Positions 63-44,947 of a DNA stretch of 64,000 nucleotides are shown here, piece by piece (position 1 is the first letter of the stretch; every line of letters begins with the position of its first letter). The stretch comes from Anthoceros angustus (Eukaryota; Plantae; Anthocerotophyta), in assembly GCA_010909165.1 (NCBI GenBank), contig VJWM01000019.1, positions 1,612,001 through 1,676,000 of the forward strand. Reading direction: 5' to 3'. Below the pieces are notes generated by a model, which worked only from the letters and a program-made list of their open reading frames with translations, was not told the origin of the DNA and did not search any database. Made by a program: the position numbers and the translations under genes.

Positions 63-1178
63 CTCCAGATTCAGTGCAAAAGCTGCTGCAGCAATTATGG
101 CGGGCAGGTAGGATGTTAAGCATAAATCGTTATCCTCGTCCAGTGCCTTTGGTGCCAACTGCAGCGAAAACCTCCTCACGGTCACCAGGAGCCCCAAAAG
201 CAGACCGACGCCACATAAGGCTGATGGAAGCCTGAAAGCCCAGACTTCAGGCCCTAGGATTTTCCCCTACAGACAGCAAGAAGTGGACAGCGCAATGCAA
301 TTCACCAGTCAGAAACCAGAGAGCGAACGCATTCGCTTCTACTAGACGAGACGAAGACTCATGAACACACCCAGTGTGGAACCTTACCGACATTGCCATC
401 AACCAATATATGAGCACGGGCTTGTCAAACCGGGGCTGTGCATTGAACTGAGGAGTGATATAATCGCCAGTTACAATCCTGCATTGCGAGCTCTTTTAAA
501 AAGATACCTGCAGCATCCCTAGAAACTGTGACAGGACCACATGAGGCTTGAAAGATCTCATATGCGGTTCATTCACTTGTGCTTTCAAACACCATGCAGG
601 AGCATTTACATTTGCCTAGCAGCTTCCACGAAAAGCGGTTCAGTATCATCCACCAAGCCGGCTGCTCCAAGGTTCCTCACCCAGGCCACCCCCGCCAGAG
701 CCCCCAGAAACAGAGCTCCAGCCAGCCTTCTCCGTAGAGGACTCATCTGTCTTACAGCGCCTGCCACGTCCGGGAACTGCAAAGGTCGGTACAGGAGGCT
801 CGGGAGAGACACCACTCTCCGTGTCCGAGATCTTCCTCTTCGCCGCGTTTTGTCCTGTTCACCGTCAGCTCCCTCTTCCTGCTCCTTACGAGCAGAAATC
901 CATCCTGCTGCATTCTGTGGCAGTCGAATTCCAGTCCTGTACCTCGAGCTCATAACAATTGCTTGACGCAATTGCAATCCATAAAACTTCCTCCGCGAGA
1001 GTGCACTATTCTGTGCAGTCTTGGGCTGCTCACAGGCTTGAGTGCACGTCCCACGCTCCGGCGTACAGAAGCGCGCCCGGACGGCAGGCCTACTGTTGCT
1101 GCCTTGCTGCAGAAATCCTGCGGGAAACGCATGCATCTTGCAAAACTCCAATGGCCGCGTGCAACCCGCGGAAGCCAT
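63..1178 (-). CDS. ArnT-like (GT-C fold, PMT_2/GT39-GT83-type) glycosyltransferase, 5' three exons; gene continues off the left edge of the window
   Basis: Exons 1178-610, 478-388 and 266-63 have GT-AG boundaries and join in frame: NLGAAGLVDDTEPLFVEAARQM-IVTGDYITPQFNAQPRFDKPVLIYWLMAMS-GKILGPEVWAFRLPSALCG...AAAAFALNLE. This is the ArnT/PMT_2 N-terminal signature (D-x-x-E acidic pair, GDxITP, DKPxLxYW, RLPSA). A ~150-aa Ser/Arg-rich N-terminal extension precedes it. Confidence 0.85.
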
Positions 1179-2031
1179 CAGTGCATCCCGAAGTTCACTA
1201 GACTGGCTGCCTGAAGTGCTTCATCTGATTGTTAACCTGAGGGACGGCTTGATTGCAGATTCCATTCCCAGAAGAGCATCCTTTGCCTTCGCACGGCCCA
1301 ACGGGAGAGGATATGACCCAGTTCACAACAAGTAGGCAAAACCCAGAACCCCTAACCACGAACTTTGTGGTCTTGCTCAGAACAGGTGCTACAAGTTGTG
1401 ACAAGTTCTTTTTCGAAGCCGTTCAAAATCGTAGAGCACTGGCTACTGAAGCTCAGTAGCCCGGTGCTCGTCCATGTCTCGGTCAGACGAACTAGCAAAC
1501 AACCAAGTCAAGCACTTCGTTCACATTCTGAGCTATGGTTGGAATACGACGGCATGATGGTGCTCTCCAGTGATGAGAAGGAAGATGTATCATTGCCTGA
1601 TTCCGTGCATCGTTTCGCTGGCCAGCAACTGCACAGAAAAACCAGGCGTTAGGCGCTTGAATATGCTTACCATTGAGGGTCGCTTTCCAAGTTTTGTGAG
1701 CAGCAGATTGCCTTTCAGGTTCGTATTGACTGGGAAGAGACAGGAAATCTGTCCCGACTTGGTGCCTGAGCTTGAGGCGTTCAAGAGTTGTGTCCATCCG
1801 ACTCCAAGCTGTTGTGATTTTTCATTCCATCATCTCGATTCTGTCCTAGTAAGCCATCAGGAGAGAGACGAGAGGGAATCTGATTTTACCGGCCTCAAGC
1901 AAGAGCTCGACGGGCCCAGCTGATTGCTTCACGGAGCTAGAGGAATTGGACACGGCGGAGAGACGACTGTTGGGGATTGTTCCTCCCAAGCCTCTAATGG
2001 CCAGTCCCCTGTCTTCACAGCTCTACCAGTG
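127..2031. repeat. Host segment A, copy 1 (other copies at 10979-12717 and 21680-23419)
   Basis: Near-identical sequence from tcgttatcctcgtccagtgcc to ctctaccagtg occurs three times in direct orientation. Confidence 0.95.
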
Positions 2032-2199
2032 TAACGGGAGCGCGAGGTACTAAGGCGCGAGGAAAGCACGAGCGTTTGCGAGAGCAGAAAGCACTGAAGG
2101 TGTTCGTTCATGTTTGGGGAAAGGTGAAGTACAAAATTGTGTCGGTTAAGTAGAGTACATGGTGGTTATTCTAAATATGCTTGGGTTATCAGCTTAACA
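2030..2199 (-). repeat. 3' LTR of a minus-strand Copia element (LTR-X)
   Basis: TGTAAC...TTAACA termini. Adjacent CACCCCCTTAA (2200-2210) is a polypurine tract on the minus strand. Similar to 10835-10975. Confidence 0.85.
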
Positions 2200-2399
2200 C
2201 ACCCCCTTAACCCTAGCAATGGTAGAGATGAAAACTTGAGAATAATGACGATTTGCTAGTATGTTGAGCTTCATCCGCCATCTTCTTACTTGAAAGATGT
2301 TCTTCTTAATAATAATATCATTTAGTGGAAAGAGGTAATAGAGATATGAAGTCTCTAAGCCCCATGGCCTCCATATGAATGAAGTGTTTATGTTTTGGT

Positions 2400-3075
2400 A
2401 GGGGCTTCGTCAGAAGATCATATTTGTGGGAACATAAGAAATCTTCACAACGTGAGTCTCATCAGCTTATCTTACATAGTGTTGTCGGATTTCAATGTGT
2501 TTAGTCCGAGAGTGAAGGCGAGGCTTACTGGCCATGGCAATAATGGACTTGTTATCACATAAAATCAGAGTTGGTGAAGCTTGTTTATAGGCGAACCGAG
2601 AAAAGTCCTCTCCCAAGCGGCTTCCTTGGATGCATCGGTCAAAGCTATGTATTCGGCCTCAGATGATAAAGCCATTGAAGTCCGCTTCTTAGACCTCCAG
2701 TTGATAGTTCCATTAGAGAGCACAAAACAATAAGATATGCTTCTTCGACTATCGGATCTCGAGGCCCAATCGCCATCAGCATATCCCGTAATGTAACGGT
2801 AGAACTATTGTCTTGAAACCAAAGCCCATAAGAGAGAGTTCTCTTTAGGTATCTATACACCCTCTTAAGCCGGTATTCACGCCCGGATTTTCTAGAAATT
2901 GAGATAAAGTGCTAATGGTATATTGGATATTGGGCCGAGTCCAACAACATAAATAGTAAAGACACCTTTGCATGCCTATAGGGAACTTGTGATATAGCAA
3001 ACTTCTCCTCATTTATTTGTGGAGATTGAAAGGTGGTCAATCCCGATTGAATGCTTCTCTTTTCAATACCCTAGG
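2400..3075 (-). mobile_element. Copia RT C-terminus and RNase H fragment
   Basis: Motifs YRHAVGCLYYL..TRPNI, ENPGREY, NWRSKKQTSMALSSTEAEYIA and HSRTKHIEIR (cleaner in copy 2, 13148-13785). Confidence 0.9.
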
Positions 3076-3754
3076 AGCAAGATGGCCTACGTGCTACCTT
3101 GCTTCTTCTTAGAAAACAACTTGGTGTCATCTTCAACAAGAGGAGCTTTTAGCAATCAAAGATATGCAAGACCTTAGTCCACTAGTGATGATTCTGATGT
3201 GTTCCGATATTGTGGAGATATTTTGACTGATGAGAATCAAAGGTCCTCCTCCTACCATTCACACAACAAGGAGACAAACTCACCTTATTATTCTCTAACT
3301 ATACCACTACACCAGTTCATAGTGTCACTCCACATAATTCGTCATCATAACGTTCTAATCGATCGGTCAAGATCATTCTACTTCTACTAAGAAACTCTAT
3401 TATCTTTGATGGATGTCATGCCGTATGATACTAATCTCTACACTTGGATTCAGTGTTTTATTAGCATTAATTAATCTAATGACTTATCTTTAAGTAAGTA
3501 ATTAGTGTTAATTAATCTAAACCACTTATGTTAATTAAGCATTGATTAGTATTAAGTAAACATGGTTAGCAATAGCTAAGTGGATAAGCTCAAGTAATAT
3601 GCTTTGGCATATTCCTTGCATATTATAGTGTATTCTTATGATACAATAGCTAAGAGGATGATTTATTAAGGTGAAAGAACGATGGAAAGAGACCATCTAG
3701 GAGGGGACAACAAATGGGGACCCGGGGTCGGAGTGAAGAGGAGCAACCAGCTCC

Positions 3755-4022
3755 CTACCTAAAGTGACCAAGCACCCACAATGTCATATGCGTAGAATAA
3801 ACGGCCGCAAAACCACGGAGGAAAGGAAAAGGCATCACCCACCGCCGCCACCTCATGGAGAATCGCTGAGGCCTGAAGAGCAATAGAAACCACTGGCCGG
3901 AGTATCTTTGTAACGGAGGGATGCGACTATGCTGCGCGCATGGTAAGCTTTGGCACAAGACTTGACGAATTTGTTAAAGTCCTCAGCCATTGCCCCATAC
4001 GTTTCTAGAGCAAGCGGGATAA
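3755..4022 (-). mobile_element. 3' fragment of a CRE-like non-LTR retrotransposon (restriction-like endonuclease C-terminus)
   Basis: AGHLFIPLALETYGAMAEDF. The homologous copy at 56351-56680 preserves YFRQRVSIALQRA, typical of CRE-clade RLE domains. A third copy lies at 14462-14752. Confidence 0.7.
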
Positions 4023-6610
4023 AGAGGTGGCCTGCTTGCATCCTGAACCCTGGACGTGAACACTAGATGTCAACTAAGCGCATATTCAGATACCTCAAGG
4101 GTACCATGCACACAGGATTGACATTCAAGTATACACCAGGCATAAAGACGTTGACATTAATAAATTACCGACGCTGACTATGGTGGACTGACACACGCAG
4201 ATCCGATCGTGTGATCGCTATTGGGGAGCACCAATATCCCGTCAAGTAAGAAACAACCAACCATAGCCTTGTCCAAAGACCGAGTATAGAGTACTAACCT
4301 CGGTTGCTAAAGACATAGTATGGACTAGGCTAACCTTGAGTGAACTTCATCACAAGCGGAAAAGCCCACCTTGTTGTTGAGTGATAGTGAGCTATAGCCT
4401 TGTCAAGGAACCCCGTCTTCCACTCTAGAACTAAACATATTGTCGAATATCATTACATCGAGAGAAAATAGAGGATAAAACTATAGATATTAGTTATGTT
4501 CAAACTTTAGATAACGCAATGATTTATTAACAAAGTCACTAGGCATTGAATCGCACAGAAACATATGAAATGTTTAGGTATATTGGACACATTGTCTAAG
4601 CCTCCACCTATAGTTCATCCTAGCGACTAAATTGGTCTACTTGAGATAACCTTACTAGTCCAATATTCTATTCTAAGTCTTGAACAATCATCCTCAATCT
4701 CAACATAGGCCTTGTATCCTCATCCTCTTCATACATAGTTGAGGAGCTCTCTGGAAAATAATATTAAAATATTAAATAATATTTTGCTAATTAAAACTTT
4801 TCCATATTTTCTTAGCCTCAGGAATACTCACGATAGACATGGATCATATGTCCGGGAAATTCTTCACAGACAGCATACATAACCCGTATCATGTGTATCT
4901 TAGTTTCCAGGCAAACATAGGAGCATGGTGGTACGTCTAGCCCGCTCTCCCCTTTCATATTAGTGATTATATAGATGAGCTTCACATCATCACCCTTGGG
5001 ATATATGCCGGGCTTCCAGAACCCTATGTTTCCTATCCTATGTCTTACTTCTAAAAGAAATCTAAAATGGGCAAGTTTTTAGCAAGAGAAAAATAAGTTA
5101 GAACACCTTTTTAGAATCACAAAAGCATGTCTACCTTTTCATTTTCTCATTTTCTTCATTTTCATTTCATTTTCCTTTTTCCCATAATTTTCCATACATA
5201 AATCTGCGAAAATAGTATCAGAAAATTCATCACAATTAATATTTTGAACTGGAAAATGGTCATTTGAAGATGCCCACAAACGGGCTTACAACTAGGTGCC
5301 TCTCCTCAAAAAAGGGGGCATCCATCGCTCAAGGTGCCTCCCTTCATGACAGGGGAACCTTATTACACACATGTTGCCTTACTTGAGATTTCAGCCTCCT
5401 TCATCAGGTGGAAGCCCTTCCATGAAGATTCTTCCAAGGCACTTGTATCGAGAGAACAATCTCGCGATTTCTTCTCCACAAGAACTTTAGAATCTTCCTC
5501 GGCGATCTCTCATCCGCACACAACTGAGGACATGACGGAGCAGCCTAGGCTTGGGATTGGCGCACTTTTCAACAAATTGAGACAAGACATGGGATCTTCT
5601 CCAATTTCCCGGCTTGGGTGAGACACTCCCGCATATGGCAGCACTCACACATCAATTGGCGATCGACTGAGGAACAAAATTCCACCTCTCCCGGTGACTT
5701 CAACATCAACACGAGTGCCACCACTTCCTACCACGAAATCGTGGTGGGCTCTCAACAAAGTTGGAATCCTAGGCAGAGGATCACCGGGAGGCGTTGCTCT
5801 TGAGGCGCGATCCCTCCCAGGCCGCTCCTCTTCTTCCACCGCAGTGTGGCGTCTTTCTTCCCAGCGACGCAGGCGACACATGGTGACGACATGGCGGGCG
5901 CGGGGCGCCCGCGCGCGCGCCCTCCGGCGGGCGCGCCGCTTCTGCACACCGCAGGCGCCAAGGAGCTTTTGGGAGGAGCGGGAGGCGGGAGGCGGGAGGA
6001 GGAGGAATAAAACCGTATGGGAGGGTACATTATGACCATATGGCGGGCATCATATGGCTCATCAATTTAATGGGTTTTCACTTTTTTTACCTCTTTCAAG
6101 TTTTCTTTTAACTTTTACCTATGGTTTTTATTAAGATTAACCTAGTTTAAGTTTTACTTTTATCTTTTTACCTTATTTAGGAATTCACTATTTTCCTAAT
6201 TAAGTTTTTGGTAATTAATTTTGATTACATTAAATTCTGCTTAAATGTAACTTAAGGCAGTTTTTAATCGTTTTCTTAGTTAGCGAATAGCTTTCAAGTT
6301 AGTGGGAGCTAACTAACCTTTTTAGGCTTATTTTGAAGCTATTTCTTCACACCTAGTTCATAGTGAGTGGGAGTGATGAAATATGACCTATTTAGGGCAC
6401 TCTTCACTAGGGCACCTAAGACCATTAATTAATTTAGTTCTTAGGGCTTTAGGTAGTTTAATGAGTAGTTAGTTGTTACAACCACTTAGAGGTTAGAACT
6501 ACTTATGGTTACAACCACCTTATGGTTATAACCACCTAGCCTATATAAAGGCTTTGTACTTTCTATTATAATCACGCATACAACTCTTTGTGCAAAGCTT
6601 TCTACTATCA
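4023..6610 (+). mobile_element. 5'-truncated Copia element: RNase H, long 3' region, PPT and 3' LTR (6374-6610)
   Basis: KRIFRYLKGT, SKKQPTIALS, NPVFHSRTKHI, ADLLTKSL. PPT-like AGTGAGTGGGAG is followed by TGATG...TATCA with TATA box CTATATAAAG at ~6541. Confidence 0.8.
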
Positions 6611-8510
6611 CTTGCTATGTTTTGCTACCTAGAGCTATGATTCTCATCAATAAACTAGTTGACTTGAATACCCATGCTATTGTATATGCTCGCACTGTCA
6701 CTTTTGATGAGGCTCGGTTAGCATCTGCTCGTTCTGTCCCCGTGGACTCTGCTTCGGCTCCTTCCGACGACACTGCTTCTTCCGACCTTATGCCTAAGTT
6801 TTTTGACTCTACCCTCTGTTTTCCCTGACTCCGGTCCTCCAGCGACTACTGCTCCACCCATGGCCTCCTCACCTCAAGCAACAACTCTGCCTATTGTTCC
6901 CGCTCGAGAGGGGGAAGATGAATAGGCCATTGTTGATCCTTTTGAAAACAGAGAAGACTTTGGTGCTCTTAATCCCCAAGACCTAGAGACCTTTCTTGCT
7001 CCACCGCCTCCAGTTATACTTGATCCAGCCCCTGAGCGACGATATCCTTTGCGTCAACGACAATCGAGACACCTCTGGAACGAGATCCCCTTTGATTTAG
7101 CGTTCAATCATGCTGGCTACACCTGCTGCAGGTCATTTCAATGCGTTCACTGTTGGTCCTTCAGAGGGAGATCCTCTCACTCTACAAGAAGCATATTCGT
7201 GACTTGATGCAGCTAAGTGGAAGTTTGCTATTGATGATGAATATAATTCTCTTATCAAAAATAATACTTGGACTTGAGTAAACTTGCCCAAAGGCAAAAC
7301 TAATGTCAAATGCAAGTGGGTTCTCAAAACTAAATTCCAGGAGGTTGAACTTCAAATTTGCTATAGAGCAAGACTAGTGGCTAAGGGTTATAGTCAGAAA
7401 GAGGGTGTGGACTATCAGGGCGATAAGGTTTATTCACCTGTTGTCAAGGCTGCTTCCGTGAGAATGCTCTTGGCTTTATGTGCCGAGCTTAATCTGGAAA
7501 TTTATCAGCTTGACATTTGTACTGCTTTCCTTTATGGTCATCTGCAAGAAGAGATCTATATGGATAAATTGGAAGACTATGAAGATGAGCAACACCCAAA
7601 CAAAGTGTGTAAACTTATTCACTCCATTTACGGACTGACGCACAGCCCACGTTTATGGTATGAAAGAATGGATTCTTACCTCAAGAAGATAGGTTTTATT
7701 CAAAGTGAAGCAGACACCAATATCTACATACTCTACAAGGATAGCTCCCTTGTACTGGTTGCACTATACATTGTTACTTATTCCTGGCAACAATATTTAA
7801 CTAGTTAACCAGATTTAAGCTGATCTTAGTAAAGAATTCGAAATGAAGAATCTCGGCAAAGTTAAATATATTCTTGGAATGCATGTACATAGAGATGCCA
7901 CTGGAGCTATTTATCTCCATCAAGGAAGATATGTAGCTGGCATGTTAAGACACTTCAATTTGGAGAATGCACATGCAGCAGCCACACCTGGCGCCGTAGG
8001 TGTTAAGCTTTCATCTACTACCCGTCCACAATCTCAACAGGAAAAGAAAGAGATGGAAAATATTCCTTATCGTATGGGAGTTGGTACTCTCATGTTCTTG
8101 AGTAATCAAACCAAACCATCTCAAATATTGTAAATGTTGTTGCTCGCCTCGGAGAATCCAAGAAAGGATCACTGGGTTGCTCTCAAGCACATCATGCGGT
8201 ACCTCAAGGGTACTCCAAATTATGGCCTCTGCTTCAAACCTAGCGGAAAGAAGCATTTGCTATTGACACGCTTTGTCGATGCAGATTGGGCTTCAGATGC
8301 TGACACTCGAAAAAATATCTCAGCATATTGTTTTTTTGCTGGCTCCACTGTTGTTAATTGGTCTTGTAGAAAACAAGCTACAATATCACTATCATCAACA
8401 GAATCGGAGCACAAAGCACTCACTGAAGCCACGATAGAGGCTAAATGGGAAAGAAAGCTATGTGAAGATTTGGATATGAAGTAGGAAGGGCCAACAATGC
8501 TTAATTGTGA
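6611..8510 (+). mobile_element. Copia pol fragment (integrase C-terminus, RT, RNase H)
   Basis: IVYARTVTFDE; CKWVLKTK..YRARLVAKGYSQKEGVDY; YQLDICTAFLYGHLQEEIYM; FVDADWASDADTRK; NWSCRKQATISLSSTESE. In-frame stops are present. Confidence 0.93.
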
Positions 8511-8767
8511 TTAATTTTTAGTTCTTAGATTTAGATAATCCAACTAGTCTGAGAGGGAGAGTTAGAAGTACAGACCGCGTTGGTTAGCTTGGCTTAACCC
8601 AGCGTGGTCATACCCTCTGGAATCTTGTACCGAAGAGGTACAATTATTCAGACACAGGCTATAAAAGTGCACTACTTGTAATCAATTGTATCAATTAGTA
8701 AAGCACTAAACTTTGATCATAAATTCGCTTCCGCAAAGCACCTCAAACCGACTTGCGGCCATCAACA
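8506..8767 (+). repeat. Probable solo or remnant LTR
   Basis: AT-rich non-coding ~260 bp between two pol fragments, with TG...CA ends and TATA-like CTATAAAAG. Confidence 0.5.
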
Positions 8768-10827
8768 TCTCCAGCCCAATATGAATCATAAAATCCAACT
8801 ACCTTGGCTTCTTGTTGTCGCTCCTTTTGCTATTTCAACTCCCAATGTTTTGTGCCGCGCAAGTACTTGAATATCCTCTTGATTGCTTGATAATGTTGTT
8901 GCCCAGGGTTGGCCAAAAATTGACTCACAACTCCCACTGCCTTTGCACTGTCGGGCCTTATCCCTATGGCCAAATATGTAAGACAAACAACAACATGCTG
9001 GTAGAGAGTTTTATCTACCTTCGCTTTCTCCTTTTCAGTTGTAGGGCTCATCTCCTTTGATAGCTTCTCATTGAAGATCATTGCCTTCATGGGTTTCCAA
9101 TCTTGCATGTCAAAAGCCTCGATAGTCTCCACATACGTTTGTTGGCTCAAAGAGTCTATATACTTGTTAGCCTTATTCCTTTTTACCTTTATTCCTAAGA
9201 AATAGTGGAGCTCACCCAAATCTCTCATATCAAAGCTTGCATTAAGGCTTTTATTTGCTAAGTCTAAGAGTTCCATGTTATTGCTAGCAATAATCAAATC
9301 GTCCATATAGACATGATGATAATTATAGATTCTCCCACTCTTTTCACATAGATATTCCAATCGATTGGTTTTTGAAACCTATAAACTGGAAAAACACATC
9401 AAGCTTACGATACCAAGCAAGGGCCGATTGCTTAAGACCATAGAGAGCCTTTAGCAGCCTACATACCTCTCCCTCGCGTCCTGGTATTTCATATTCCTTT
9501 GGTTGGTCCATGTAGATCTCTTCATCCACATTTCTATTTAGAAAAGCGGTGAGAACATCCATTAAATATATCTCCATGTCGAAAGAGGATGCGATAGCTA
9601 GAGTTTTGGAGATGCTATCTTAGCAACAAGGGAGAAGGCAAAGATAATCCACGCTTGGGACTTGTGTATATCCTTTGCCCAGTATTTGCCTTGTGGCGCT
9701 CTATGCTTCCATCAACCTTGCGCTTAATCTTAAATGTCCACTTGGATCCTATGCTCTTCCTTAGGAGGTAGAGGAGTGATTACCCAAGTGTTATTCTTGA
9801 GAAGGAGTTATATTAATTGTCCACGGCTTCTTTCCACTCCTTCGCCTTTGGTCATTCCAATGCCTCCCTCACGCTTTGTGGTTCGCCGGCATCTGCCAAC
9901 CATGCCTCCTCATACACACATGCATTCATGGATTCCAAGATCTTCCGTGAAGGTTTCAAACTACTCAACAAAGATAGTGATCACCTTGCCCTCCTGGAGG
10001 TTTCATCTCCGCCTCCTCATTTGATCAACCAAGCTTTTCAACTTGTTGACATGTTGACTGTCGCCTCACCATCTTGAAGTTGGAGAATTGACTTTCCAAC
10101 AAAGATTCCACTCACAATGCTCTTCTTCTCGACGTTGTAAAGAATTTTTCATGCATCCTGCCAAGAGACACACTCACTCAATTGTGAGAGAACGTCATCT
10201 AACCCATTCAGAATAATATTAGCCAAGGCTTTCGGATCCTTGCCTACATCCTTTTCAGAAGGGCCATATGAAAGTCCATTTTCTACAAACTTTCACAATC
10301 CTTTGTCAATGAGATTTTAGCTTCAACTCCATAATGTGAAGTTCCTGACATCCAACTTCTCCACTTGATGCGTAGTCTCCATATGCATGCCGTTGGAAGC
10401 CATGCAAAGACGAGACAAAAATTCCTCGCACCAAAACTACTGCCAAGCGTCGCAAAATTGCAAACAAGCTTTCACAGACACTTCGTCTGCATAGCTACAA
10501 ATAATGCAATTCGTCTGCATAGCTACAAATAATGCAATAAAAGGCAAGTAACAACAGTCCCACACAAGGTGGTGTAGAGTACTTTTTGCAGCTCCTGAAC
10601 CATGCTCTGATACCATGTTAGAGAACAGTAAGTCCCAATTTCAGTGCAATAAAAATGGTGTGCTATGCATACATATATAGTCCTTGGCCTTGTCATGTTC
10701 TCGATAATATGAACCCTATCTCGATCTTGGGATTGTCCTATCTACTTCTAGGACTTATTCTATCTACTTATAGGACTTATTCTCTGAACTCTAATATGGG
10801 ATCTGTTGCACTGATCGATTTCTAACA
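8768..10827 (-). mobile_element. Internally deleted Copia element: 5' LTR (10616-10827), tRNA-Met PBS, gag joined to RT
   Basis: LTR TGTTAG...CTAACA; PBS TGGTATCAGAGCA (10603-10615, minus). Gag reads VEKLDGRNFTLWKLKLK...FKMAEGDTVQQHV; RT reads DVLTAFLN..EEIYMDQP, LKALYGLKQS, VYMDDL (clearer at 19595-20362). Protease and integrase are missing. Confidence 0.9.
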
Positions 10828-10834
10828 GATACCA

Positions 10835-10975
10835 TGTAGCGGGAGCGCGAGGCACTGAGGAGGAAAGTACGAGCGTTTTGTTCATGTTTGGGGAAATGTG
10901 AAGTACACAAAATTGTGTCGGTTCAGTAGAGTACGTGGTGGTTATTCTAACTGCGCTTGGGTTATTAGCTTAACG
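10835..10975 (-). repeat. 5' LTR related to LTR-X, with truncated PBS TGGTATC (10828-10834)
   Basis: TGTAGCGGGAGCGCGAGG...AGCTTAAC resembles 2030-2199 but is diverged and shorter. Confidence 0.82.
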
Positions 10976-10978
10976 CGC

Positions 10979-12717
10979 TCGTTATCCTCGTCCAGTGCCT
11001 TTGGTGCCAAATGCAGCGAAAACCTCCTCACCGTCACCAGGAGCCCCAAAAGCAGACCGACGCCACATAAGGCTGATGGAAGCCTGAAAGCCCAGACTTC
11101 AGGCCCTAGGATTTTCCCCTACAGACAGCAAGAAGTGGACAGTGCAATGCAATTCACCAGTCAAAAACCAGAGAGCGAACGCATTCGCTTCTACTAGACG
11201 AGACGAAGACTCATGAACACACCCAGTGTGGAACCTTACCGACATTGCCATCAACCAATATATGAGCACGGGCTTGTCAAACCGGGGCTGTGCATTGAAC
11301 TGAGGAGTGATATAATCGCCAGTTACAATCCTGCATTGCGAGCTCTTTTAAAAAGATACCTGCAGCATCCCTAGAAACTGTGACAGGACCACATGAGGCT
11401 TGAAAGATCTCATATGCGGTTCATTCACTTGTGCTTTCAAACACCATGCTTACAGCGCCTGCCACGTCCGGGAACTGCAAAGGTCGGTACAGGAGGCTCG
11501 GAGAGACACCACTCTCCGTGTCCGAGATCTTCCTCTTCGCCGCGTTTTGTCCTGTTCACCGTCAGCTCCCTCTTCCTGCTCCTTACCAGCAGAAATCTAC
11601 CCTGCTGCATTCTGTGGCAGTCGAATTCCAGTCCTGTACCTCGAGCTCATAACAATTGCTTGATGCAATTGCAATCCATAAAACTTCCTCCCCGAGAGTG
11701 CACGATTCTGTGCAGTCTTGGGCTGCTCACAGGCTTGAGTGCACGTCCCACGCTCCGGCGTACAGAAGCGCGCCCGGACGGCAGGCCTACTGTTGCTGCC
11801 CTGGTGCAGAAATCCTGCAGGAAACGCATGCATCTTGCAAAACTCCAATGGCAACCCGCGGAAGCCATCAGTGCATCCCGAAGTTCACTAGACTGGCTGC
11901 CTGAAGTGCTTCATCTGATTGTTAACCTGAGGGACGGCCTGATTGCAGATTCCATTCCCAGAAGAGCATCCTTTGCCTTTGCACGGCCCAATGGGAGGAT
12001 ATGACCCAGTTCACAACAAGTAGGCAAAACCCAAAACCCCTAACCACGAACTTGTGGTCTTGCTCAGAACAGGTGCTACAAGTTGTAACAAGTTCTTTTT
12101 CGAAGCCGTTCAAAATCATAGAGCACTGGCTACTGAAGCTCTGTAGCCCGGTGCTCGTCCATGTCTCGGTCAGACGAACTAGCAAACAACCAAGTCAAGC
12201 ACTTCGTTCACATTCTGAGCTATGGTTGGAATACGACGGCATGATGGTGCTCTCCAGTGATGAGAAGGAAGATGTATCATTGCCTGATTCCGTGCATCGT
12301 TTCGCTGGCCAGCAACTGCACAGAAAAACCAGGCGTAAGGCGCTTGAATATGCTTGCCATTGAGGGTCGCTTTCCAGGTTTGTGACCAGCAGGTTGCCTT
12401 TCAGGTTCGTATTGACTGGGAAGAGACAGGAAATTTGTCCCGACTTGGCGCCTGAGCTTGAGGCGTTCAAGAGTTGTGTCCATCCGACTCCAAGCTGTTG
12501 TGATTTTTCACTCCATCATCTCGATTCTGTCCTAGTAAGCCATCAGGAGAGAGACGAGAGGGAATCTGATTTTACCGGCCTCAAGCAAGAGCTCGACGGG
12601 CCCAGCTGATTGCTTCACGGAGCTAGAGGAATTGGACACGGCGGAGAGACGACTGTTGGGGATTGTTCCTCCCAAGCCTCTAATGGCCAGTCCCCTGTCT
12701 TCACAGCTCTACCAGTG
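10979..12717 (-). pseudogene. Segment A copy 2: truncated ArnT-like pseudogene fragment
   Basis: Lacks ~154 bp (598-751 of copy 1), which removes the LVDDTEPLFVEAARQM exon end and its donor site. Cut inside exon 3 by the LTR. Confidence 0.85.
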
Positions 12718-15700
12718 TAACGGGAGCGCGAGGTACTAAGGCGCGAGGAAAGCACGAGCGTTTGCGAGAGCAGAAAGCACTGAAGGTGTTCGTTCATGTT
12801 TGGGGAAAGGTGAAGTACAAAATTGTGTCGGTTAAGTAGAGTACATGGTGGTTATTCTAAATATGCTTGGGTTATCAGCTTAACACACCCCCTTAACCCT
12901 AGCAATGGTAGAGATGAAAACTTGAGAATAATGACGATTTGCTAGTATGTTGAGCTTCATCCGCCATCTTCTTACTTGAAAGATGTTCTTCTTAATAATA
13001 ATATCATTTAGTGGAAAGAGGTAATAGAGATATGAAGTCTCTAAGCCCCATGGCCTCCATATGAATGAAGTGTTTTATGTTTTGGTAGGGGCTTAAGATC
13101 ATATTTGTGGGAACATAAGAAATCTTCACAACGTGAGTCTCATCAGCTTATCTTACATAGTGTTGTCGGATTTCAATGTGTTTAGTCCGAGAGTGAAGGC
13201 GAGGCTTACTGGCCATGGCAATAATGGACTTGTTATCACATAAAATCAGAGTTGGTGAAGCTTGTTTATAGGCCGAACCTTCGAGAAAAGTCCTCTCCCA
13301 AGCGGCTTCCTTGGATGCATCAGTCAAAGCTATGTATTCGGCCTCCGTAGATGATAAAGCCATTGAAGTCTGCTTCTTAGACCTCCAGTTGATAGTTCCA
13401 TTAGAGAGCACAAAACAATAAGCAGATATGCTTCTTCGACTATCGGGATCTGAGGCCCAATCGCCATCAGCATATCCCGTAATGTAACGGTAGAACTATT
13501 GTCTTGAAACCAAAGCCCATAAGAGAGAGTTCTCTTTAGGTATCTATACACCCTCTTAACTGCTGAGCAGTATTCACGCCCGGGATTTTCTAGAAATTGA
13601 GATAAAGTGCTAATGGTATATTGGATATTGGGCCGAGTCCAACAACATAAATAGTAAAGACACCCCACTGCATGCCTATAGGGAACTTGTGATATAGCAA
13701 ACTTCTCCTCATTTATTTGTGGAGATTGAAAGGTGGTCAACTGTAACCGATTGAATGCTTCTCTTTTCAATACCCTAGGGAGCAAGATGGCCTACGTGCT
13801 ACCTTGCTTCTTCTTAGAAAACAACTTGGTGTCATCTTCAACAAGAGGAGCTTTTAGCAATCAAAGATATGCAAGACCTTAGTCCACTAGTGATGATTCT
13901 GATGTGTTCCGATATTGTGGAGATATTTTGACTGATGAGAATCAAAGGTCCTCCTCCTACCATTCACACAACAAGGAGACAAACTCACCTTATTATTCTC
14001 TAACTATACCACTACACCAGTTCATAGTGTCACTCCACATAATTCGTCATCATAACGTTCTAATCGATCAGGTCAGCATCATTCTACGGCTTCTACTAAG
14101 AAACTCTATTATGCTGATGGATGTCATGCCGTATGATACTAATCTCTACACTTGGATTCAGTGTTTTATTAGCATTAATTAATCTAATGACTTATCTTTA
14201 AGTAAGTAATTAGTGTTAATTAATCTAAACCACTTATGTTAATTAAGCATTGATTAGTATTAAGTAAACATGGTTAGCAATAGCTAAGTGGATAAGCTCA
14301 AGTAATATGCTTTGGCATATTCCTTGCATATTATAGTGTATTCTTATGATACAATAGCTAAGAGGATGATTTATTAAGGTGAAAGAACGATGGAAAGAGA
14401 CCATCTAGGAGGGGACAACAAATGGGGACCCGGGTCGGAGTGAAGAGGAGCAACCAGCTCCCTACCTAAAGTGACCAAGCGCACCCACAATGTCATATGC
14501 GTAGAATAAACACGCAAAACCACGGAGGAAAGGAAAAGGCATCACCCACCGCCGCCACCTCATGGAGAATCGCTGAGAGCCTGCTGAAGAGCAATAGAAA
14601 CCACTGGCCGGAGTATCTGAAGTACGAGAGGGACACAGACTATGCCTCACACGATGGTAAGCTTTGGCACAAGACTTGACGAATTTGTTAAAGTCCTCAC
14701 CATTGCCCCATACGCTTTAGAGCAAGCGGGATAAAGAGGTGGCCTGCTTGCATCCTGAACCCTGGACGTGAACACTAGATGTCAACTAAGCGCATATTCA
14801 GATACCTCAAGGGTACCATGCACAGGATTGACATTCAAGTATACACCGAGCATAAAGACGTTGACATTAATACCACGCCGACGCCGACTATGCCGGTGAC
14901 ACACGCAGATCCGTGACGTTACGCATCGCTATTGGGGAGCACCAATATCCCGGTCAAGTAAGAAACAACCAACCATAGCCTTGTCCAAAGACCGAGTCGA
15001 GTATAGAGTACTAACCTCGGTTGCTAAAGACATAGTATGGACTAGGCTAACCTTGAGTGAACTTCATCACAAGGTGAAAAGCCCACCTTGTTGTTGAGTG
15101 ATAGTCGTGAGCTATAGCCTTGTTAAGGAACCCTGTCTTCCACTCTAGAACTAAACATATTGTCGAATATCATTACATCAGAGAGAAAATAGAGGATAAA
15201 ACTATAGATATTAGTTATGTTCAAACTTTAGATAACGCAGCTGATTTATTAACAAAGTCACTAGGCATTGAACTGCACAGGAAACACATGAAATGTTTAG
15301 GTATATTGGACACATTGTCTAAGTCTCCAGCCTAGAGTTCATCCTAGCAGCTAAATTGGTCTACTTGAGATAACCTTAAAAACTAGTCCAATATTCTATT
15401 CTAAGTCTTCTGAACAATCATCCTCAATCTCAACATAGGCCTCGTATCCTACGTCCTCTTCTTCATACATAGTTGAGGAGCTCTCTGGAAAATAATATTA
15501 AAATATTAAATAATATTTTGCTAATTAAAACTTTTCCATATTTTCTTAGCCTCAAGAATACTCATAGACATGGATCATATGTCGGAAATTCTTCACAAAA
15601 GCATACATAACCCGTATCATGTGTATCTTAGTTTCCTGGCAAACATAGGAGCATGGTGGTACGCCCGCTCTCCCCTTTCATATTAGTGATTATATAGATG

Positions 15701-18700
15701 AGTTTCATATCATCACCCTTGGGATATATGCCGGGCTTCCAGAACCCTATGTTTCCTATCCTATGTCTTCCTTCTCCAAAAAAAAAAAATGGGCAAGTTT
15801 TAGCAAGAGAAAAATAAGTTAGAATACTTTTTTAGAATCACAAAAGGCATGTCTACCTTTTTCATTTTTCTCATTTTCTTCATTTTCCACTTCATTTTCC
15901 TTTTTCCCATAATTTTCCATACATAAATCTGCGAAAATAGTATCAGAAAATTCATCACAATTGATATTTTTGGAACTGGAAAATGGTCATTTGAAGATGC
16001 CCACAAACGGGCTTACAACTTGGTGTCTCTTCCTTACAAAAAGGGGGGGTGGGGGGAGGCATTCTTCATCCTGCTCTAAGGTGCCTCCCCTTCATGACAG
16101 GGGTTGACACCTTATTACACACAATCAGGGGGTGCCTTACTTGAGATTTCAGCCTCGCTCATCGCAGGAAGCTCTTCCATGAACACTCTTCCAAGGCAGT
16201 TGAGTCAGAGAGAGCAATTTCAAGCGATTTCTTCTCCACAAGAACTTTCTGGAATCTTCCTCGACGATCTCTCATCTGCACACAACTGTGGTGACGGCTT
16301 GCTGCATTTGGAGCAGGCCTAGGCTTGGGATTGGCAGCAGGCACTTTCAACAAATTAAGACAAGACATGGGGGCAATATCTTTCTCCAATTTCCCGGCCT
16401 GAGTGAGGTACTCCCGCATAAAGACTCACACATCAATTGGCGACCTCCAAGACCGCAGGACGACTTCCACCTCTCCAAGGTGACTTCAACATCAACACGA
16501 GTGCGGACCACTTCCTACCACCGGAAATCGTGGTGGGCTCTCAACAAAGTTGGAATCCAGGGAGGCGTGAGAGGATCACCGGGAGGCGTTGCTCTTGAGG
16601 CGCGATCCCTCCCAGGGCGCACTCCTCCCAATTCTTCTTCCATGCGGGCGGCCATCTTGCGGCAGGCGCCGTGCGACGCGGTGAGGCACATGTGGGCGGG
16701 CCGCCCCGATGGGCAGCGTCCCTCGGCCAGGCCGCTTCTGCACGGATCATGCCATGGCGGAGCTTTCTTTGGGGAGGCGCGGCGGGAGGCGGGCGCGATG
16801 GAGGCGGGAGGGAATAAAACCGTATGGGAGGGTACATAATGATGACTTCACATGGCATATGGTCAGTTACCATTTAATGGGTTTTCACTTTTTACCTCTT
16901 TCAAGTTTTCCTTTAACTTTTACCTATAGTTTTTACTAAGATTAACCTAGTTTAAGTTTTACTTTTATCTTTTTACCTTGTTTAGGATTTCACTATTTTC
17001 TAATTAATTTTTTGGTAATTAATTTTGATTACATTAAATTCTGCTTAAATGTAACTTAAGCCAGTTTTTAATTGTTTTCTTAGTTAGCGAATAGCTTTCA
17101 AGTTAGTGGGAGCTAACTAACCTTTTTAGGCTTATTTTGAAGCTATTTCTTCACACCTAGTTCATAGTGAGTGGGAGTGATGAAATATGACCTATTTAGG
17201 GCACTCTTCACTAGGGCACCTAAGACTATTAATTAATTTAGTTCTTAGGGCTTTAGGTAGTTTATTTAGTAGTTAGTTGTTACAACCACCTAGAGGTTAG
17301 AACTACTTATAGTTACAACCACCTTATGGTTATAACCACCCAGCCTATATAAAGGCTTTGTACTTTCTATTATAATCAATGCATACAACTCTTTGTGCAA
17401 AGCTTTCTACTATCTGCTTGCTATGTTTTGCTACCTAGAGCAGCTATGATTCTCATCAATAAACTAGTTGACTTGAATACCCATGCTATTGTATATGCTC
17501 GCACTGTCACTTTTGATGAGGCTCGGTTAGCATCGCTGGATTCTCCCGTGGACTCGCGGCTCCTTACGACACCGCTTCTTGGACCTTATGCCTAAGTTTT
17601 TGACTCTACCCTCTGTTTTCCACGACTCGGTCCTCCACACTCTTGCTCCACCCATGGCCTCTCCTCACCTCAAGCAACAACTCACTGTTCTCAGAGGGGA
17701 AGATGAATAGGCCATTGTTGATCCTTTTGAAAACAGACTTTGGTGCTCTTAATCCCCAAGACCTAGAGACCTTTCTTGCTCCACCGCCTCCGGTTATACT
17801 TGATCCAGCGACGATATCCTTTGCGGCAATCGAGACACCTGGAAGAGATCCCTTTGATTTAGCGTTCAATCATGCGGCTACACTGCGAGTCATTTCAATC
17901 GTTCACTGGTCCTTGAGGAGATCCTCTCACTCTACAAGAAGCATATTCTGACTTGATGCGCTAAGTGGAAGTTTGCTATTGATGATGAATATAATTCTCT
18001 TATCAAAAATAATACTTGGACTTGAGTAAACTTGCCCAAAGGCAAAACTAATGTCAAATGCAAGTGGGTTCTCAAAACTAAATTCCAGGAGGTTGAACTT
18101 CAAATTTGCTATAGAGCAAGACTAGTGGCTAAGGGTTATAGTCAGGAAGAGGGTGTGGACTATCAGGGCGATAAGGTTTATTCACCGTTGTCAAGGCCGA
18201 GAATGCTCTTGGCTTTATGTGCCGAGCTTAATCTGAAATTTATCACATTTTGTACTTTCCTTTATGGTCATCGCAAGAGATCTATATGGATAAATTGGAA
18301 GACTATGAAGATGAGCAACACCCAAACAAAGTGTGTAAACTTATTCACTCCATTTTCTTGGCCACGCGTTTATGGTATGAAAGAATGGATTCTTACCTCA
18401 AGAAGATAGGTTTATTCAAAGTGAAGGACACCAATATCTACTCTACAAGGATAGCTCCCTTGTACTGGTTGCACTATACATTGTTACTTATTCCTGGCAA
18501 CAATATTTAACTAGTTAACCAGATTTAAGCTGATCTTAGTAAAGAATTCGAAATGAAGAATCTCGGCAAAGTTAAATATATTCTTGGAATGCATGTACAT
18601 AGAGATGCCACTGGAGCTATTTATCTCCATCAAGGAAGATATGTAGCTGGCATGTTAAGACACTTCAATTTGGAGAATGCACATGCAAGACCACACGCCG

Positions 18701-21676
18701 TAGGTGTTAAGCTTTCATCTACTACCCGTCCACAATCTCAACAGGAAAAGAAAGAGATGGAAAATATTCCTTATCGTATGGGAGTTGGTACTCTCATGTT
18801 CTTGAGTAATCAAACCAAACCATCTCAAATATTGTAAATGTTGTTGCTCAGTTCTCAGAGAATCCAAGAAAGGATCACTGGGTTGCTCTCAAGCACATCA
18901 TGCGGTACCTCAAGGGTACTCCAAATTATGGCCTCTGCTTCAAACCTAGCGGAAAGAAGCATTTGCTATTGACACGCTTTGTCGATGCAGATTGGGCTTC
19001 AGATGCTGACACTCGAAAAAATATCTCAGCATATTGTTTTTTTGCTGGCTCCACTGTTGTTAATTGGTCTTGTAGAAAACAAGCTACAATATCACTATCA
19101 TCAACGAATCGGAGCACAAAGCACTCAGACGATAGAGGCTAAATGGGAAAGAAAGCTATGTGAAGATTTGGATATGAAGTAGGAAGGGCCAACAATGCTT
19201 AATTGTGATTAATTTTTAGTTCTTAGATTTAGATAATCCAACTAGTCTCGAGGGAGAGTTAGAAATGCAGACCCGCGTTGGTTGGCTTGAAGCAACAGTG
19301 GTCATACCCTCGGAATCTTGTCAGAGGTACAATTATTCAGGCTATAAAAGTGCACTACTTGTAATCAATTGTATCAATTAGTAAAGCACTAAACTTTGAT
19401 CATAAATTGCTTCATAAGCACCTCAAACCGACTTCGCCATCAACATCTCCAGCCCAATATGAATCATAAAATCCAACTACCTTGGCTTCTTGTTGTCGCT
19501 CCTTTTGCTATTTCAACTCCCAATGTTTTGTGCCAAGTACTTGAATATCCTCTTGATTGCTTGATAATGTTGTTGCCAGTTGGCCAAAATTGACTCACAA
19601 CTCCCCTTTTTTGTCGGGCCTTATCCCTATGGCCAAATATGTAAGACAAACAACAACATGCTGGTAGAGAGTTTTATCTACCTTCGCTTTCTCCTTTTCA
19701 GTTGTAGGGCTCATCTCCTTTGATAGCTTCTCATTGAAGATCATTGGCGTCTTCATGGGTTTCCAATCTTGCATGTCAAAACGCTCCAGTATAGTCTCCA
19801 CATACGTTTGTTGGCTCAAAGAGTCTATATACTTGTTAGCCTTATTCCTTTTTACCTTTATTCCTAAGAAATAGTGGAGCTCACCCAAATCTCTCATATC
19901 AAAGCTTGCATTAAGGCTTTTATTTGCTAAGTCTAAGAGTTCCATGTTATTGCTAGCAATAATCAAATCGTCCATATAGACAGCGATGATAATTATAGAT
20001 TCTCCCACTCTTTTCACATAGATATTCCAATCAGCATTGGTTTTTTTGAAACCTATAAACTGGAAAAACACATCAAGCTTACGATACCAAGCAAGGGCAG
20101 ATTGCTTAAGACCATAGAGAGCCTTTAGCAGCCTACATACCTCTCCCTCGCGTCCTGGTATTTCATATTCCTTTGGTTGGTCCATGTAGATCTCTTCATC
20201 CACATTTCTATTTAGAAAAGCGGTGAGAACATCCATTAAATATATCTCCATGTCGAAAGAGGATGCGATAGCTAGCAGAGTTTGGACAGATGCTATCTTA
20301 GCAACAAGGGAGAAGGTGTCAGTATAATCCACGCTTGGGACTTGTGTATATCCTTTGCCCACCAGATTTGCCTTGTAGCGCTCTATGCTTCCATCAACCT
20401 TGCGCTTAATCTTAAATGTCCACTTGGATCCTATGCTCTTCCTTCCGGGAGGTAGAGGAGTGATTACCCAAGTGTTATTCTTGAGAAGGGAGTTATATTA
20501 ATTGTCCACGGCTTCTTTCCACTCCTTCGCCTTTGGTCATTCCAATGCCTCCCTCACGCTTTGTGGTTCGCCGGCATCTGCCAACCATGCCTCCTCATAC
20601 ACACATGCATTCATGGATTCCAAGATCTTCTGTGAAGGTTTCCAAACTACTCAACAGCATAGTGATCACCTTGCCCTCTGGAGGTTTCATCTCTGCCTCC
20701 CTCATTTGATCAACCAAGCTTTTCAACTTGTTGACATGTTGCTGAACGGTGTCGCCCTCAGCCATCTTGAAGTTGGAGAATTGACTTTCCAACAGCATTC
20801 CACTCACAATGCTCTTCTTCTCGTACGTTGTGCAAAGAATTTTTCATGCATCCTGCGAAGAGACACACTCACTCAATTGTGAGAGAACGTCATCTAACCC
20901 ATTCAGAATAATATTAGCCAAGGCTTTCGCATCCTTGCCTACATCCTTTTCAGAAGGGCCATATGAAAGTCCATTTTCTACAAACTTTCACAATCCTTTG
21001 TCAATGAGAAGAGATTTTAGCTTCAACTTCCATAATGTGAAGTTCCTGCCATCCAACTTCTCCACTTGATGCGTAGTCTCCATATGCATGCCGTTGGAAG
21101 CCATGCAAAGACGAGACAAAAATTCCTCGCACCAAAACTACTGCCAAGCGTCGCAAAATTGCAAACAAGCTTTCACAGACACTTCGTCTGCATAGCTACA
21201 AATAATGCAATTTCCCGCATAGCTACAATAATGCAATAAAAGGCAAGTAACATAGTCCCACACAAGGTGGTGTAGAGTACTTTTTGCAGCTCCTGAACCA
21301 TGCTCTGATACCATGTTAGAGAACAGTAAGTCCCAATTTCAGTGCAATAAAAATGGTGTGCTATGCATACATATATAGTCCTTGGCCTTGTCATGTTCTC
21401 GATAATATGAACCCTATCTCGATCTTGGGATTGTCCTATCTACTTCTAGGACTTATTCTATCTACTTATAGGACTTATTCTCTGAACTCTAATATGGGAT
21501 CTGTTGCACTGATCGATTTCTAACAGATACCATGTAGCGGGAGCGCGAGGCACTGAGGCGGGAGGAAAGTACGAGCGTTTGTTCATGTTTGGGGAAATGT
21601 GAAGTACACAAAATTGTGTCGGTTCAGTAGAGTACGTGGTGGTTATTCTAACTGCGCTTGGGTTATTAGCTTAACG
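12716..21676. mobile_element. Copia nest, copy 2 (tandem duplicate of 2030-10975)
   Basis: Same order and junctions of all sub-elements. LTRs at 12716-12885, 21314-21525 and 21533-21676. Confidence 0.93.
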
Positions 21677-21679
21677 CGC

Positions 21680-23419
21680 TCGTTATCCTCGTCCAGTGCC
21701 TTTGGTGCCAAATGCAGCGAAAACCTCCTCACCGTCACCAGGAGCCCCAAAAGCAGACCGACGCCACATAAGGCTGATGGAAGCCTGAAAGCCCAGACTT
21801 CAGGCCCTAGGATTTTCCCCTACAGACAGCAAGAAGTGGACAGTGCAATGCAATTCACCAGTCAAAAACCAGAGAGCGAACGCATTCGCTTCTACTAGAC
21901 GAGACGAAGACTCATGAACACACCCAGTGTGGAACCTTACCGACATTGCCATCAACCAATATATGAGCACGGGCTTGTCAAACCGGGGCTGTGCATTGAA
22001 CTGAGGAGTGATATAGTCGCCAGTTACAATCCTGCATTGCGAGCTCTTTTAAAAAGATACCTGCAGCATCCCTAGAAACTGTGACAGGACCACATGAGGC
22101 TTGAAAGATCTCATATGCGGTTCATTCACTTGTGCTTTCAGACACCATGCTTACAGCGCCTGCCACGTCCGGGAACTGCAAAGGTCGGTACAGGAGGCTC
22201 GGGAGAGACACCACTCTCCGTGTCCGAGATCTTCCTCTTCGCCGCGTTTTGTCCTGTTCACCGTCAGCTCCCTCTTCCTGCTCCTTACCAGCAGAAATCT
22301 ACCCTGCTGCATTCTGTGGCAGTCGAATTCCAGTCCTGTACCTCGAGCTCATAACAATTGCTTGATGCAATTGCAATCCATAAAACTTCCTCCGCGAGAG
22401 TGCACGATTCTGTGCAGTCTTGGGCTGCTCACAGGCTTGAGTGCACGTCCCACGCTCCGGCGTACAGAAGCGCGCCCGGACGGCAGGCCTACTGTTGCTG
22501 CCCTGGTGCAGAAATCCTGCAGGAAACGCATGCATCTTGCAAAACTCCAATGGCAACCCGCGGAAGCCATCAGTGCATCCCGAAGTTCACTAGACTGGCT
22601 GCCTGAAGTGCTTCATCTGATTGTTAACCTGAGGGACGGCCTGATTGCAGATTCCATTCCCAGAAGAGCATCCTTTGCCTTTGCACGGCCCAATGGGAGG
22701 ATATGACCCAGTTCACAACAAGTAGGCAAAACCCAAAACCCTAACCACGAACTTTGTGGTCTTGCTCAGAACAGGTGCTACAAGTTGTAACAAGTTCTTT
22801 TTCGAAGCCGTTCAAAATCATAGAGCACTGGCTACTGAAGCTCTGTAGCCCGGTGCTCGTCCATGTCTCGGTCAGATGAACAAGCAAGCAACCAAGTCAA
22901 GCACTTCATGCACATTCTGAGCTATGGTTGGAATACGACGGCATGATGGTGCTCTCCAGTGATGAGAAGGAAGATGTATCATTGCCTGATTCCGTGCATC
23001 GTTTCGCTGGCCAGCAACTGCACAGAAAAACCAGGCGTAAGGCGCTTGAATATGCTTGCCATTGAGGGTCGCTTTCCAGGTTTGTGACCAGCAGGTTGCC
23101 TTTCAGGTTCGTATTGACTGGGAAGAGACAGGAAATCTGTCCCGACTTGGCGCCTGAGCTTGAGGCGTTCAAGAGTTGTGTCCATCCGACTCCAAGCTGT
23201 TGTGATTTTTCACTCCATCATCTCGATTCTGTCCTAGTAAGCCATCAGGAGAGAGACGAGAGGGAATCTGATTTTACCGGCCTCAAGCAAGAGCTCGACG
23301 GGCCCAGCTGATTGCTTCACGGAACTAGAGGAATTGGACACGGCGGAGAGACGACAGTTGGGGATTGTTCCTCCCAAGCCTCTAATGGCCAGTCCCCTGT
23401 CTTCACAGCTCTACCAGTG
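21680..23419 (-). pseudogene. Segment A copy 3: truncated ArnT-like pseudogene fragment continuing into unique sequence
   Basis: Carries the same ~154-bp deletion as copy 2. After ctaccagtg it continues into unique DNA rather than an LTR. Confidence 0.85.
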
Positions 23420-23519
23420 GAATTTAACCCACACTACTACTGTATCTGCGTTGTGATCGCACTTGTGATGCTCAAGAGGTTCCGCCAACGCCAGAGCTTC
23501 ACGACTCAGCTACTAGCAG

Positions 23520-44835: not shown

Positions 44836-44947
44836 AGCCGGAAGAGGGAGCTTCGCTTGGTGAACGGCCACACAACAAACATGCCCGGTCGGCACGGTTT
44901 CCGTCCATTCAAATCTAAAACCACACTGGAAGCCGGATTAACGCTGT

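Follow-up and report, generated by a model that had tools for sequence, protein, structure and literature searches.

The window, by which is meant the whole stretch of 64,000 nucleotides of Anthoceros angustus DNA analysed here, carries at its left edge a set of minus-strand exons with the motifs of a bacterial-type sugar transferase. This raises the question as to what kind of enzyme a hornwort gene encodes there, where it came from and in which membrane its product would work. A reading made from the sequence alone had proposed three spliced exons of an intron-containing nuclear gene for a cyanobacterial-type glycosyltransferase of the ArnT/GT-C class, behind an N-terminal extension, and a pathway uncharacterised in plants. 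The analysis that followed makes it likely that the minus-strand interval 63-1178 represents the 5' third of an intron-containing nuclear gene for a GT-C glycosyltransferase of the ArnT branch, which is of cyanobacterial descent and would work in an organelle.

Gene Structure at the Left Edge of the Window

The gene is cut by the left end of the window; the visible part constitutes its 5' third, and about two thirds lie beyond. Three GT..AG introns are present at the locus, two of them complete within the window (Table 1). A 190-codon open reading frame (606-1178, minus strand) starts with ATG and ends in ...GLVDDTEPLFVEAARQ(M), the C-terminal stretch of the exon 1 frame being GLVDDTEPLFVEAARQM. 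The invariant methionine at this end is split by intron 1, with two of its bases ending exon 1 and the third opening exon 2. The product of exon 2, IVTGDYITPQFNAQPRFDKPVLIYWLMAMS, comprises the split-Met base and 30 codons that include GDYITPQFN and RFDKPVLIYW, and exon 3 adds 68 codons that run from WAFRLPSAL... to a terminal FALNLE. In terms of layout, codons 1 to ~145 of exon 1 form the extension and are followed by TM1 (~150-170) and by the acidic motif of the first loop, GLVDDTEP...EAARQ; the exon 2 region corresponds to the first extracytoplasmic loop with its RFDKP motif, and the exon 3 region to TM2 (WAFRLPSAL...), a variable loop and the beginning of TM3 (...FALNLE). At positions 62-1 the frame stays open to position 1; this stretch was considered as coding sequence and rejected, as the homologues carry there a conserved VV.WGS.ALSDML that is not encoded here. 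Because likeness to the homologues stops at this point, positions 62-1 are read as the start of intron 3.

Table 1. Coordinates of the features discussed, in positions of the window.
Feature	Position	Strand	Remarks
Exon 1	1178-610	minus	CDS from ATG 1178-1176; donor GT 609-608
Intron 1	609-479	minus	131 bp, GT..AG, phase 2; falls at junction 160/161 of the moss protein P0017
Exon 2	478-388	minus	acceptor AG 480-479, donor GT 387-386
Intron 2	387-267	minus	121 bp, GT..AG, phase 0
Exon 3	266-63	minus	acceptor AG 268-267, donor GT 62-61
Intron 3 (start)	62-1	minus	GT at 62-61; remainder of gene left of the window
N-terminal extension, coding region	744..1178	minus	~145 residues before TM1; candidate targeting peptide
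Copy B, degraded 5' fragment and upstream region	10979..12720	minus	10.8 kb away
Copy C, degraded 5' fragment	21680..23422	minus	21.6 kb away; same lesions as B
Degraded copia-type LTR retrotransposon	2024..10978	minus	8.9 kb; between copies A and B
Second LTR element copy	~12710-21679	minus	RVT_2 ORF 19595-20362
SufB (ABCI8) gene	31477-32979	plus	N-terminal presequence; apparently one long exon, then an intron near the C-terminus
Formamidopyrimidine-DNA glycosylase N-terminal domain ORF	40490-41173	plus	ordinary plant gene
VTT (TVP38/TMEM64) domain ORF	43699-44895	minus	ordinary plant gene
RPE65/carotenoid-oxygenase-like ORF	49015-49614	minus	weak match, E 3e-4, below threshold
DUF7869 domain ORF	58974-59435	minus	E 6e-14

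Evidence That the Exons Are Coding Sequence

Homology searches were run exon by exon, and the position of the window gene in its family is thus given as exon-by-exon identities. In a phmmer search of 1.84 billion proteins, exon 1 gave 14 matches with E values from 7.5e-26 to 1e-5. The best of these, a protein of 195 residues (P0001, E 7.5e-26) that is the product of a relative's 9.8-kb genomic contig, shares 59% identity with exon 1, reaching into the N-terminal extension; the others include a Calypogeia fissa protein of 759 residues (E 1.7e-16), an 808-residue eukaryotic protein, a Chara braunii protein and a cyanobacterial “Ara4N transferase-like” protein. By BLASTP, the three exons match the Ceratodon protein P0017 back to back (exon 1 at residues 77-160, exon 2 at 161-190 and exon 3 at 191-264), and the Sphagnum and Calypogeia proteins are likewise matched at abutting residues; against the relative P0002, exon 1 aligns with residues 139-206. 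Exon 2 is 77-90% identical to plant and Chara proteins and 70-85% identical to cyanobacterial ones, and exon 3 is 45-53% identical to moss and liverwort proteins with all 68 residues aligned. By their E values and identities, the exon matches are far above chance.

The exons were also added, each as a separate fragment, to a family alignment of 52 sequences, in which columns conserved to 90% or more were taken as conserved. All 26 such columns that fall in the visible exons are kept (9/9 in exon 1, 10/10 in exon 2, 7/7 in exon 3), and the cyanobacterial motif consensus that the sequence-only reading had given proved correct in the same alignment. The three spliced exons and their motifs, as first proposed, thus hold: their borders are GT..AG, they match abutting residues of the homologues and they keep the conserved columns. 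As far as comparative sequence analysis reaches, this confirms both how the visible part is spliced and that it can encode protein.

Exon-sized queries give little in domain and structure searches. No Pfam match rose above threshold when the single exons were scanned, the PMT_2 domain being split over exons 2-3 and the part beyond the window; the sole NCBIfam match was a weak one of exon 2 to ArnT PRK13279 (E 0.0038, 15.9 bits). In a phmmer search of the PDB, exon 2 led to ArnT at E 1.3 and the other exons to nothing useful, and by tblastn against plasmids exon 2 matched weakly (E 0.05) “phospholipid carrier-dependent glycosyltransferase” genes of Ralstonia. A search for related loci with a 53-residue query returned no relative, and word searches miss the full-length kin of exon-sized queries.

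All three exons recur in the relative's genomic contig (L001), where DNA identity in exons 1-2 is 75-84%, and its downstream exons are collinear and span residues 105-666 of the moss protein. Two contigs of ~2.9 kb from other runs contain an uninterrupted 808-codon open reading frame, and one of them (L002) has an AT-rich trailer with a poly(A) run at its end. These contigs look like mRNA assemblies and would represent a polyadenylated full-length transcript in another eukaryote.

Membership of the ArnT Branch of GT-C Glycosyltransferases

The full-length relatives place the family. Pfam PMT_2 (PF13231), with a gathering cut-off of 26.1 bits, is found in P0002, P0006, P0008, the partial Chara protein P0010 and the cyanobacterial P0009 at 28-42 bits; it is the sole Pfam domain in the first four, in which no MIR domain was found. 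A profile of the eukaryotic relatives run against the PDB has a single solved match, the ArnT of Cupriavidus (5ezm, E 9e-24), and up to an E of 1 no Pmt1/2/4, ALG or PIG chain appears. Structure prediction points in the same direction: Foldseek matches the AF2 model of the moss orthologue P0017 (pLDDT 83.9, pTM 0.83) to ArnT 5f15 with a TM of 0.79 and an E of 1e-18, and the next folds (OST, ALG, Emb, Pmt) follow with a TM of 0.56 or less and an E of 1e-6 or worse, namely 4e-6 for ALG9 and 2e-4 to 6e-3 for the Pmt chains.

The motifs in the visible exons agree with this placement. GLVDDTEP (exon 1) aligns with the PDEG segment of ArnT, and RFDKP (exon 2) with FEKPP of 5ezm. In the 52-sequence alignment, the D of the acidic first-loop motif is invariant and its E 98% conserved, both being kept in exon 1; the D, K and P of the acidic-Lys-Pro motif, kept in exon 2 as RFDKP, are invariant across the family. 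RFDKP further aligns with the pair numbered E84/K85 in the published structure, at the carrier-phosphate and metal site of ArnT. As had been read from the exons at the outset, the predicted protein is thus a member of the ArnT branch of GT-C glycosyltransferases; the ER PMT/PIG type, kinship with which would have refuted that reading, is excluded. The CAZy class is presumably GT83, in line with literature classification. ArnT proper, that is the lipid IVA/lipid A Ara4N transferase, was considered and rejected: because the plant orthologues and two cyanobacterial relatives reach only 72-136 bits against the ArnT equivalog model NF009784, with its cut-off of 567, orthology to ArnT is denied.

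Relatives and Origin

Word searches with the Calypogeia protein and with the eukaryotic alignment find, at 43-49% identity, sequences from Calypogeia, Ceratodon, Sphagnum and other eukaryotes; next come some 100 cyanobacterial proteins labelled “ArnT family” (30-37%, E ~1e-80) and then other bacteria (E ~1e-30). In prokaryotic genomes, taken one per species, at least 556 relatives are found among the 600 pattern matches listed, and the best 80 of these come from cyanobacteria of many orders or from MAGs. Within the word- and length-limited search, no relative was found in seed plants, ferns, lycophytes, Marchantia or Riccia, several such proteomes being in the database; because the search depended on shared words and on length, this absence is suggestive only.

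A maximum-likelihood tree (56 rows, all of them database proteins; quick search; SH-aLRT support) unites seven eukaryotic proteins, Chara, liverwort and mosses included, in one clade (97, starred). This clade is sister to a cyanobacterial clade (90, unstarred), and a branch with a support of 100 (starred) parts both from other bacteria. The eukaryote branch is long, and its clade stands beside the sampled cyanobacteria and not nested among them, in a sample among whose rows early-branching cyanobacteria were not identified. The cyanobacterial affinity of the plant family, which the sequence-only reading had proposed, is shown by the best 80 prokaryotic relatives and by this sister relationship, at the resolution of such a tree. 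A cyanobacterium was probably the source of the lineage, at a time before the streptophyte algae and land plants split, and many lineages would have lost it later. The transfer may have been endosymbiotic or an ancient lateral one; the tree, whose long eukaryote branch is compatible with nesting within the cyanobacteria, agrees with both.

The N-Terminal Extension

The extension had been put at ~150 residues, close to the ~145 residues now placed ahead of TM1. Its net charge is +16 (R+K 26 vs D+E 10), and acidic residues are few in the first 95. All full-length eukaryotic homologues are extended N-terminally, by ~95-230 residues that differ in length and are unalignable in sequence, and the AlphaFold model of the moss orthologue shows disorder over residues 1-85; the cyanobacterial homologues have no such extension, their N-terminus lying 20-35 residues ahead of the acidic motif. 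The extension fits an organelle presequence, which makes organelle targeting of the product plausible. Localisation predictors are described as unreliable outside seed plants (PMC11581415).

Just ahead of TM1 (window 743-800, minus strand) stands the motif LLYRPLQFPDV, with YRP..FPD in Calypogeia and similar forms in Ceratodon, P0006 and P0001. It is common to the land-plant proteins and absent from the cyanobacterial ones, and may lie where the mature protein begins or serve an interaction specific to plants.

Gene Neighbourhoods in Cyanobacteria

In 29 of 80 species-representative genomes, ycf20 (DUF565) is the divergent upstream neighbour of the cyanobacterial gene, within 1.5 kb and on the opposite strand, and it is likewise the divergent upstream neighbour in four of six longer contexts (loci L004-L009). 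The ycf20/DUF565 family is plastid-associated. Directly upstream on the same strand, 24 of the 80 genomes encode a conserved protein of ~200 residues, to which the gene tables give no Pfam family and which is 48% identical between two orders. A hybrid histidine kinase is found downstream in three of the six longer contexts and is followed in two by kaiABC. The cyanobacterial neighbourhoods examined contain no sugar-activating or ArnC-like gene from which the donor could be told. One locus, from a Phormidesmis-type cyanobacterium, has another PMT_2 paralogue directly after the ArnT-like gene, on its downstream side (L007, 6791-8464).

Nuclear Context, Degraded Copies and Retrotransposons

The window holds copia reverse-transcriptase remnants together with SufB, FPG and VTT genes. 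The SufB protein matches those of liverworts (Riccia, Marchantia, Calypogeia) at 75-78% over 92-100% of the query and those of mosses at 81-83% over shorter spans; fern and seed-plant proteins come after. By these matches the host is placed among land plants of bryophyte grade. With copia elements and plant genes such as SufB alongside it, the split gene is borne out as an intron-containing nuclear one.

The gene stands at the end of an array (window 127-23422) in which its 5' segment alternates with LTR elements: segment, element, segment, element, segment. The first segment (127-2034) belongs to the gene described above, hereafter copy A, and comprises its promoter region and its sequence from exon 1 as far as the middle of exon 3. 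The segment copies are 96-99% identical to each other and the LTR element copies ~94%. The same four lesions are found in copies B and C: 7 bp are missing near codon 7, a stop interrupts the frame, a loss of 153 bp takes out TM1, the acidic motif and the splice donor, and the sequence breaks off in mid exon 3; by these they are clearly pseudogene fragments. Because two neighbouring copies have come to this state, the locus is regarded as unstable. Copy A is the only one that runs on into the remainder of the gene, and copy C the only one that leads into unique upstream sequence. An exact-seed repeat search found no long LTRs; by blastn, the first element has short terminal direct repeats (2024-2198 and 10830-10974, 84-90% identical), and RT/RNase H remnants lie within it at ~2400-3000. 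As a conjecture, the array would have arisen by unequal recombination between transposon copies.

Proposed Function and Alternative Explanations

Judging from its family, the protein would be a multi-pass membrane enzyme that takes a sugar from a polyprenyl-phosphate carrier and passes it to a lipid, glycan or protein acceptor at the non-cytosolic (lumenal or intermembrane) face of the membrane. For this it would draw on the first-loop acidic residues (DDTE) and on RFDKP, whose D-K pair aligns with the E-K pair by which ArnT binds the carrier phosphate. Because of the N-terminal extension and the cyanobacterial ancestry, it would act in an organelle membrane, the likeliest being the inner envelope of the plastid or the thylakoid. 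The links to lipid A or peptidoglycan put forward in the sequence-only reading were neither borne out nor contradicted by the analysis. A more specific and tentative proposal, of low probability, sees in the enzyme a remnant of the machinery that glycosylated the cyanobacterial envelope or thylakoid; it would still be active in the plastids of streptophyte algae and bryophytes, draw on a plastid polyprenyl-phosphate sugar donor and be functionally coupled to Ycf20-family proteins; this coupling is proposed because gene order in cyanobacteria puts ycf20 beside the gene in over a third of the representative genomes.

Two readings would deny the gene its place in the family or in the plant. Some relatives are labelled “glycosyltransferase family 39” and the Pfam name of the domain is PMT_2, from which the gene might be taken for a eukaryotic ER protein O-mannosyltransferase (GT39) or a mannosyltransferase of the PIG/ALG type. 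As the PDB profile search finds ArnT alone, the Foldseek E values separate ArnT widely from Pmt and ALG9 and the orthologues scanned have no MIR domain, this identity is refuted at the level of family placement by the profile, Foldseek and Pfam results and deserves virtually no credence. Cyanobacterial contamination, or a very recent lateral transfer, might explain the 70-85% identity of the core motifs to their cyanobacterial counterparts, but it would have to account for spliceosomal-type introns at positions common to a relative, for the N-terminal extension, for flanks of plant origin and for a eukaryote clade in which Chara, mosses and a liverwort stand together; we regard it as very improbable, and as refuted by the intron structure and the tree.

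The other two readings accept the enzyme and question where it works or whether this copy is alive. The same protein could be mitochondrial or dually targeted instead of plastid: the extension is rich in arginine, with the positive net charge given above, the Lpx lipid A-like pathway of plants is reported to be mitochondrial, and the reported weakness of localisation predictors outside seed plants leaves room for such a destination. The cyanobacterial ancestry and the ycf20 linkage in cyanobacteria speak against it, both indirectly, and on balance we think it unlikely. Copy A might itself be dead or dying, as the third fragment of a locus split by retrotransposon-associated duplication, with a functional copy, if any, elsewhere. 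The adjacent copies B and C are indeed degraded, the remainder of copy A lies beyond the window and the locus is set in transposon debris. However, copy A has an intact 190-codon open reading frame and three canonical splice-site pairs, keeps every conserved residue of its visible exons as well as the 153 bp lost from B and C and, unlike these, passes through exon 3 to a donor site, which makes its death distinctly improbable. The preferred reading remains that of an enzyme of the ArnT branch, most likely in a plastid membrane, encoded by a gene of which copy A is the 5' third.

Comparison with Known Systems

Among known proteins, the closest are the cyanobacterial ones annotated as ArnT family or GT39 (e.g., of Oscillatoria nigro-viridis PCC 7112 and Synechocystis sp. 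PCC 7509), which share 30-37% identity over the whole catalytic body, the motifs GL.DETEPLFAEAARQM, TRFDKPPLIYW and RLPSAL, and a C-terminal soluble domain that is common to them and the plant relatives. By comparison, the plant side has the extension of ~95-230 residues, the pre-TM1 motif and introns. ArnT itself (PmrK; 5ezm, 5f15), the transferase of 4-amino-4-deoxy-L-arabinose to lipid A, has the same fold as the modelled moss orthologue and is alike in its acidic first-loop motif, in the acidic-Lys-Pro motif (FEKPP in ArnT) and in the undecaprenyl-phosphate-type donor to be expected, but differs in that identity is ~20% and that the gene on the plant side is a eukaryotic nuclear one. Pmt1/2/4 (GT39) belong to the same GT-C superfamily, use a polyprenyl-phosphate sugar donor and have a DE-type first-loop motif; they differ in that the plant relatives have no MIR domain, no match at sequence level and a weak structural match.

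The likeness that bears most on novelty comes from a published listing. Ulvskov et al. (2013; PMC3797821) listed GT83 for red algae and for a single green plant, Physcomitrella, and favoured lateral transfer. These proteins, which are of bacterial type and nuclear-encoded in archaeplastids, probably represent the same family; in comparison, the present tree brings in members from Chara, Sphagnum, Ceratodon and Calypogeia, and the source that it suggests is cyanobacterial. The initial claim that the pathway is uncharacterised in plants stands in so far as no functional study was found, and was overstated as to novelty: because GT83 in Physcomitrella has been on record since 2013, the locus is a further member of a known, uncharacterised family. 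The literature search, in which Per-ARNT-Sim papers drown out the term “ArnT”, found no characterised member of the cyanobacterial ArnT-like family and none from plants; the family goes unmentioned in a preprint on the Marchantia plastid proteome and in a review of plastid peptidoglycan. What is added here is modest, namely a wider distribution among streptophytes, the cyanobacterial sister relationship and the linkage to ycf20.

Significance

The locus itself contributes one more member of the family and an example of retrotransposon-associated duplication of gene fragments, and little else; the family matters more. Certain functions of the bacterial envelope, peptidoglycan among them, are retained in the plastids of bryophytes and streptophyte algae and reduced in seed plants. 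The family is a second candidate for such a retained function: the searches placed it in Chara, mosses and a liverwort, and none of its members came from a seed plant, fern or lycophyte. If the tentative proposal made above is true, this patchy retention marks an undescribed plastid glycosylation pathway that depends on a lipid carrier and possibly shares its carrier pool with plastid peptidoglycan synthesis. The ycf20 linkage provides a concrete first hypothesis on function, and work on the substrates of plant or cyanobacterial members could open up the biochemistry of the plastid and cyanobacterial envelope or thylakoid.
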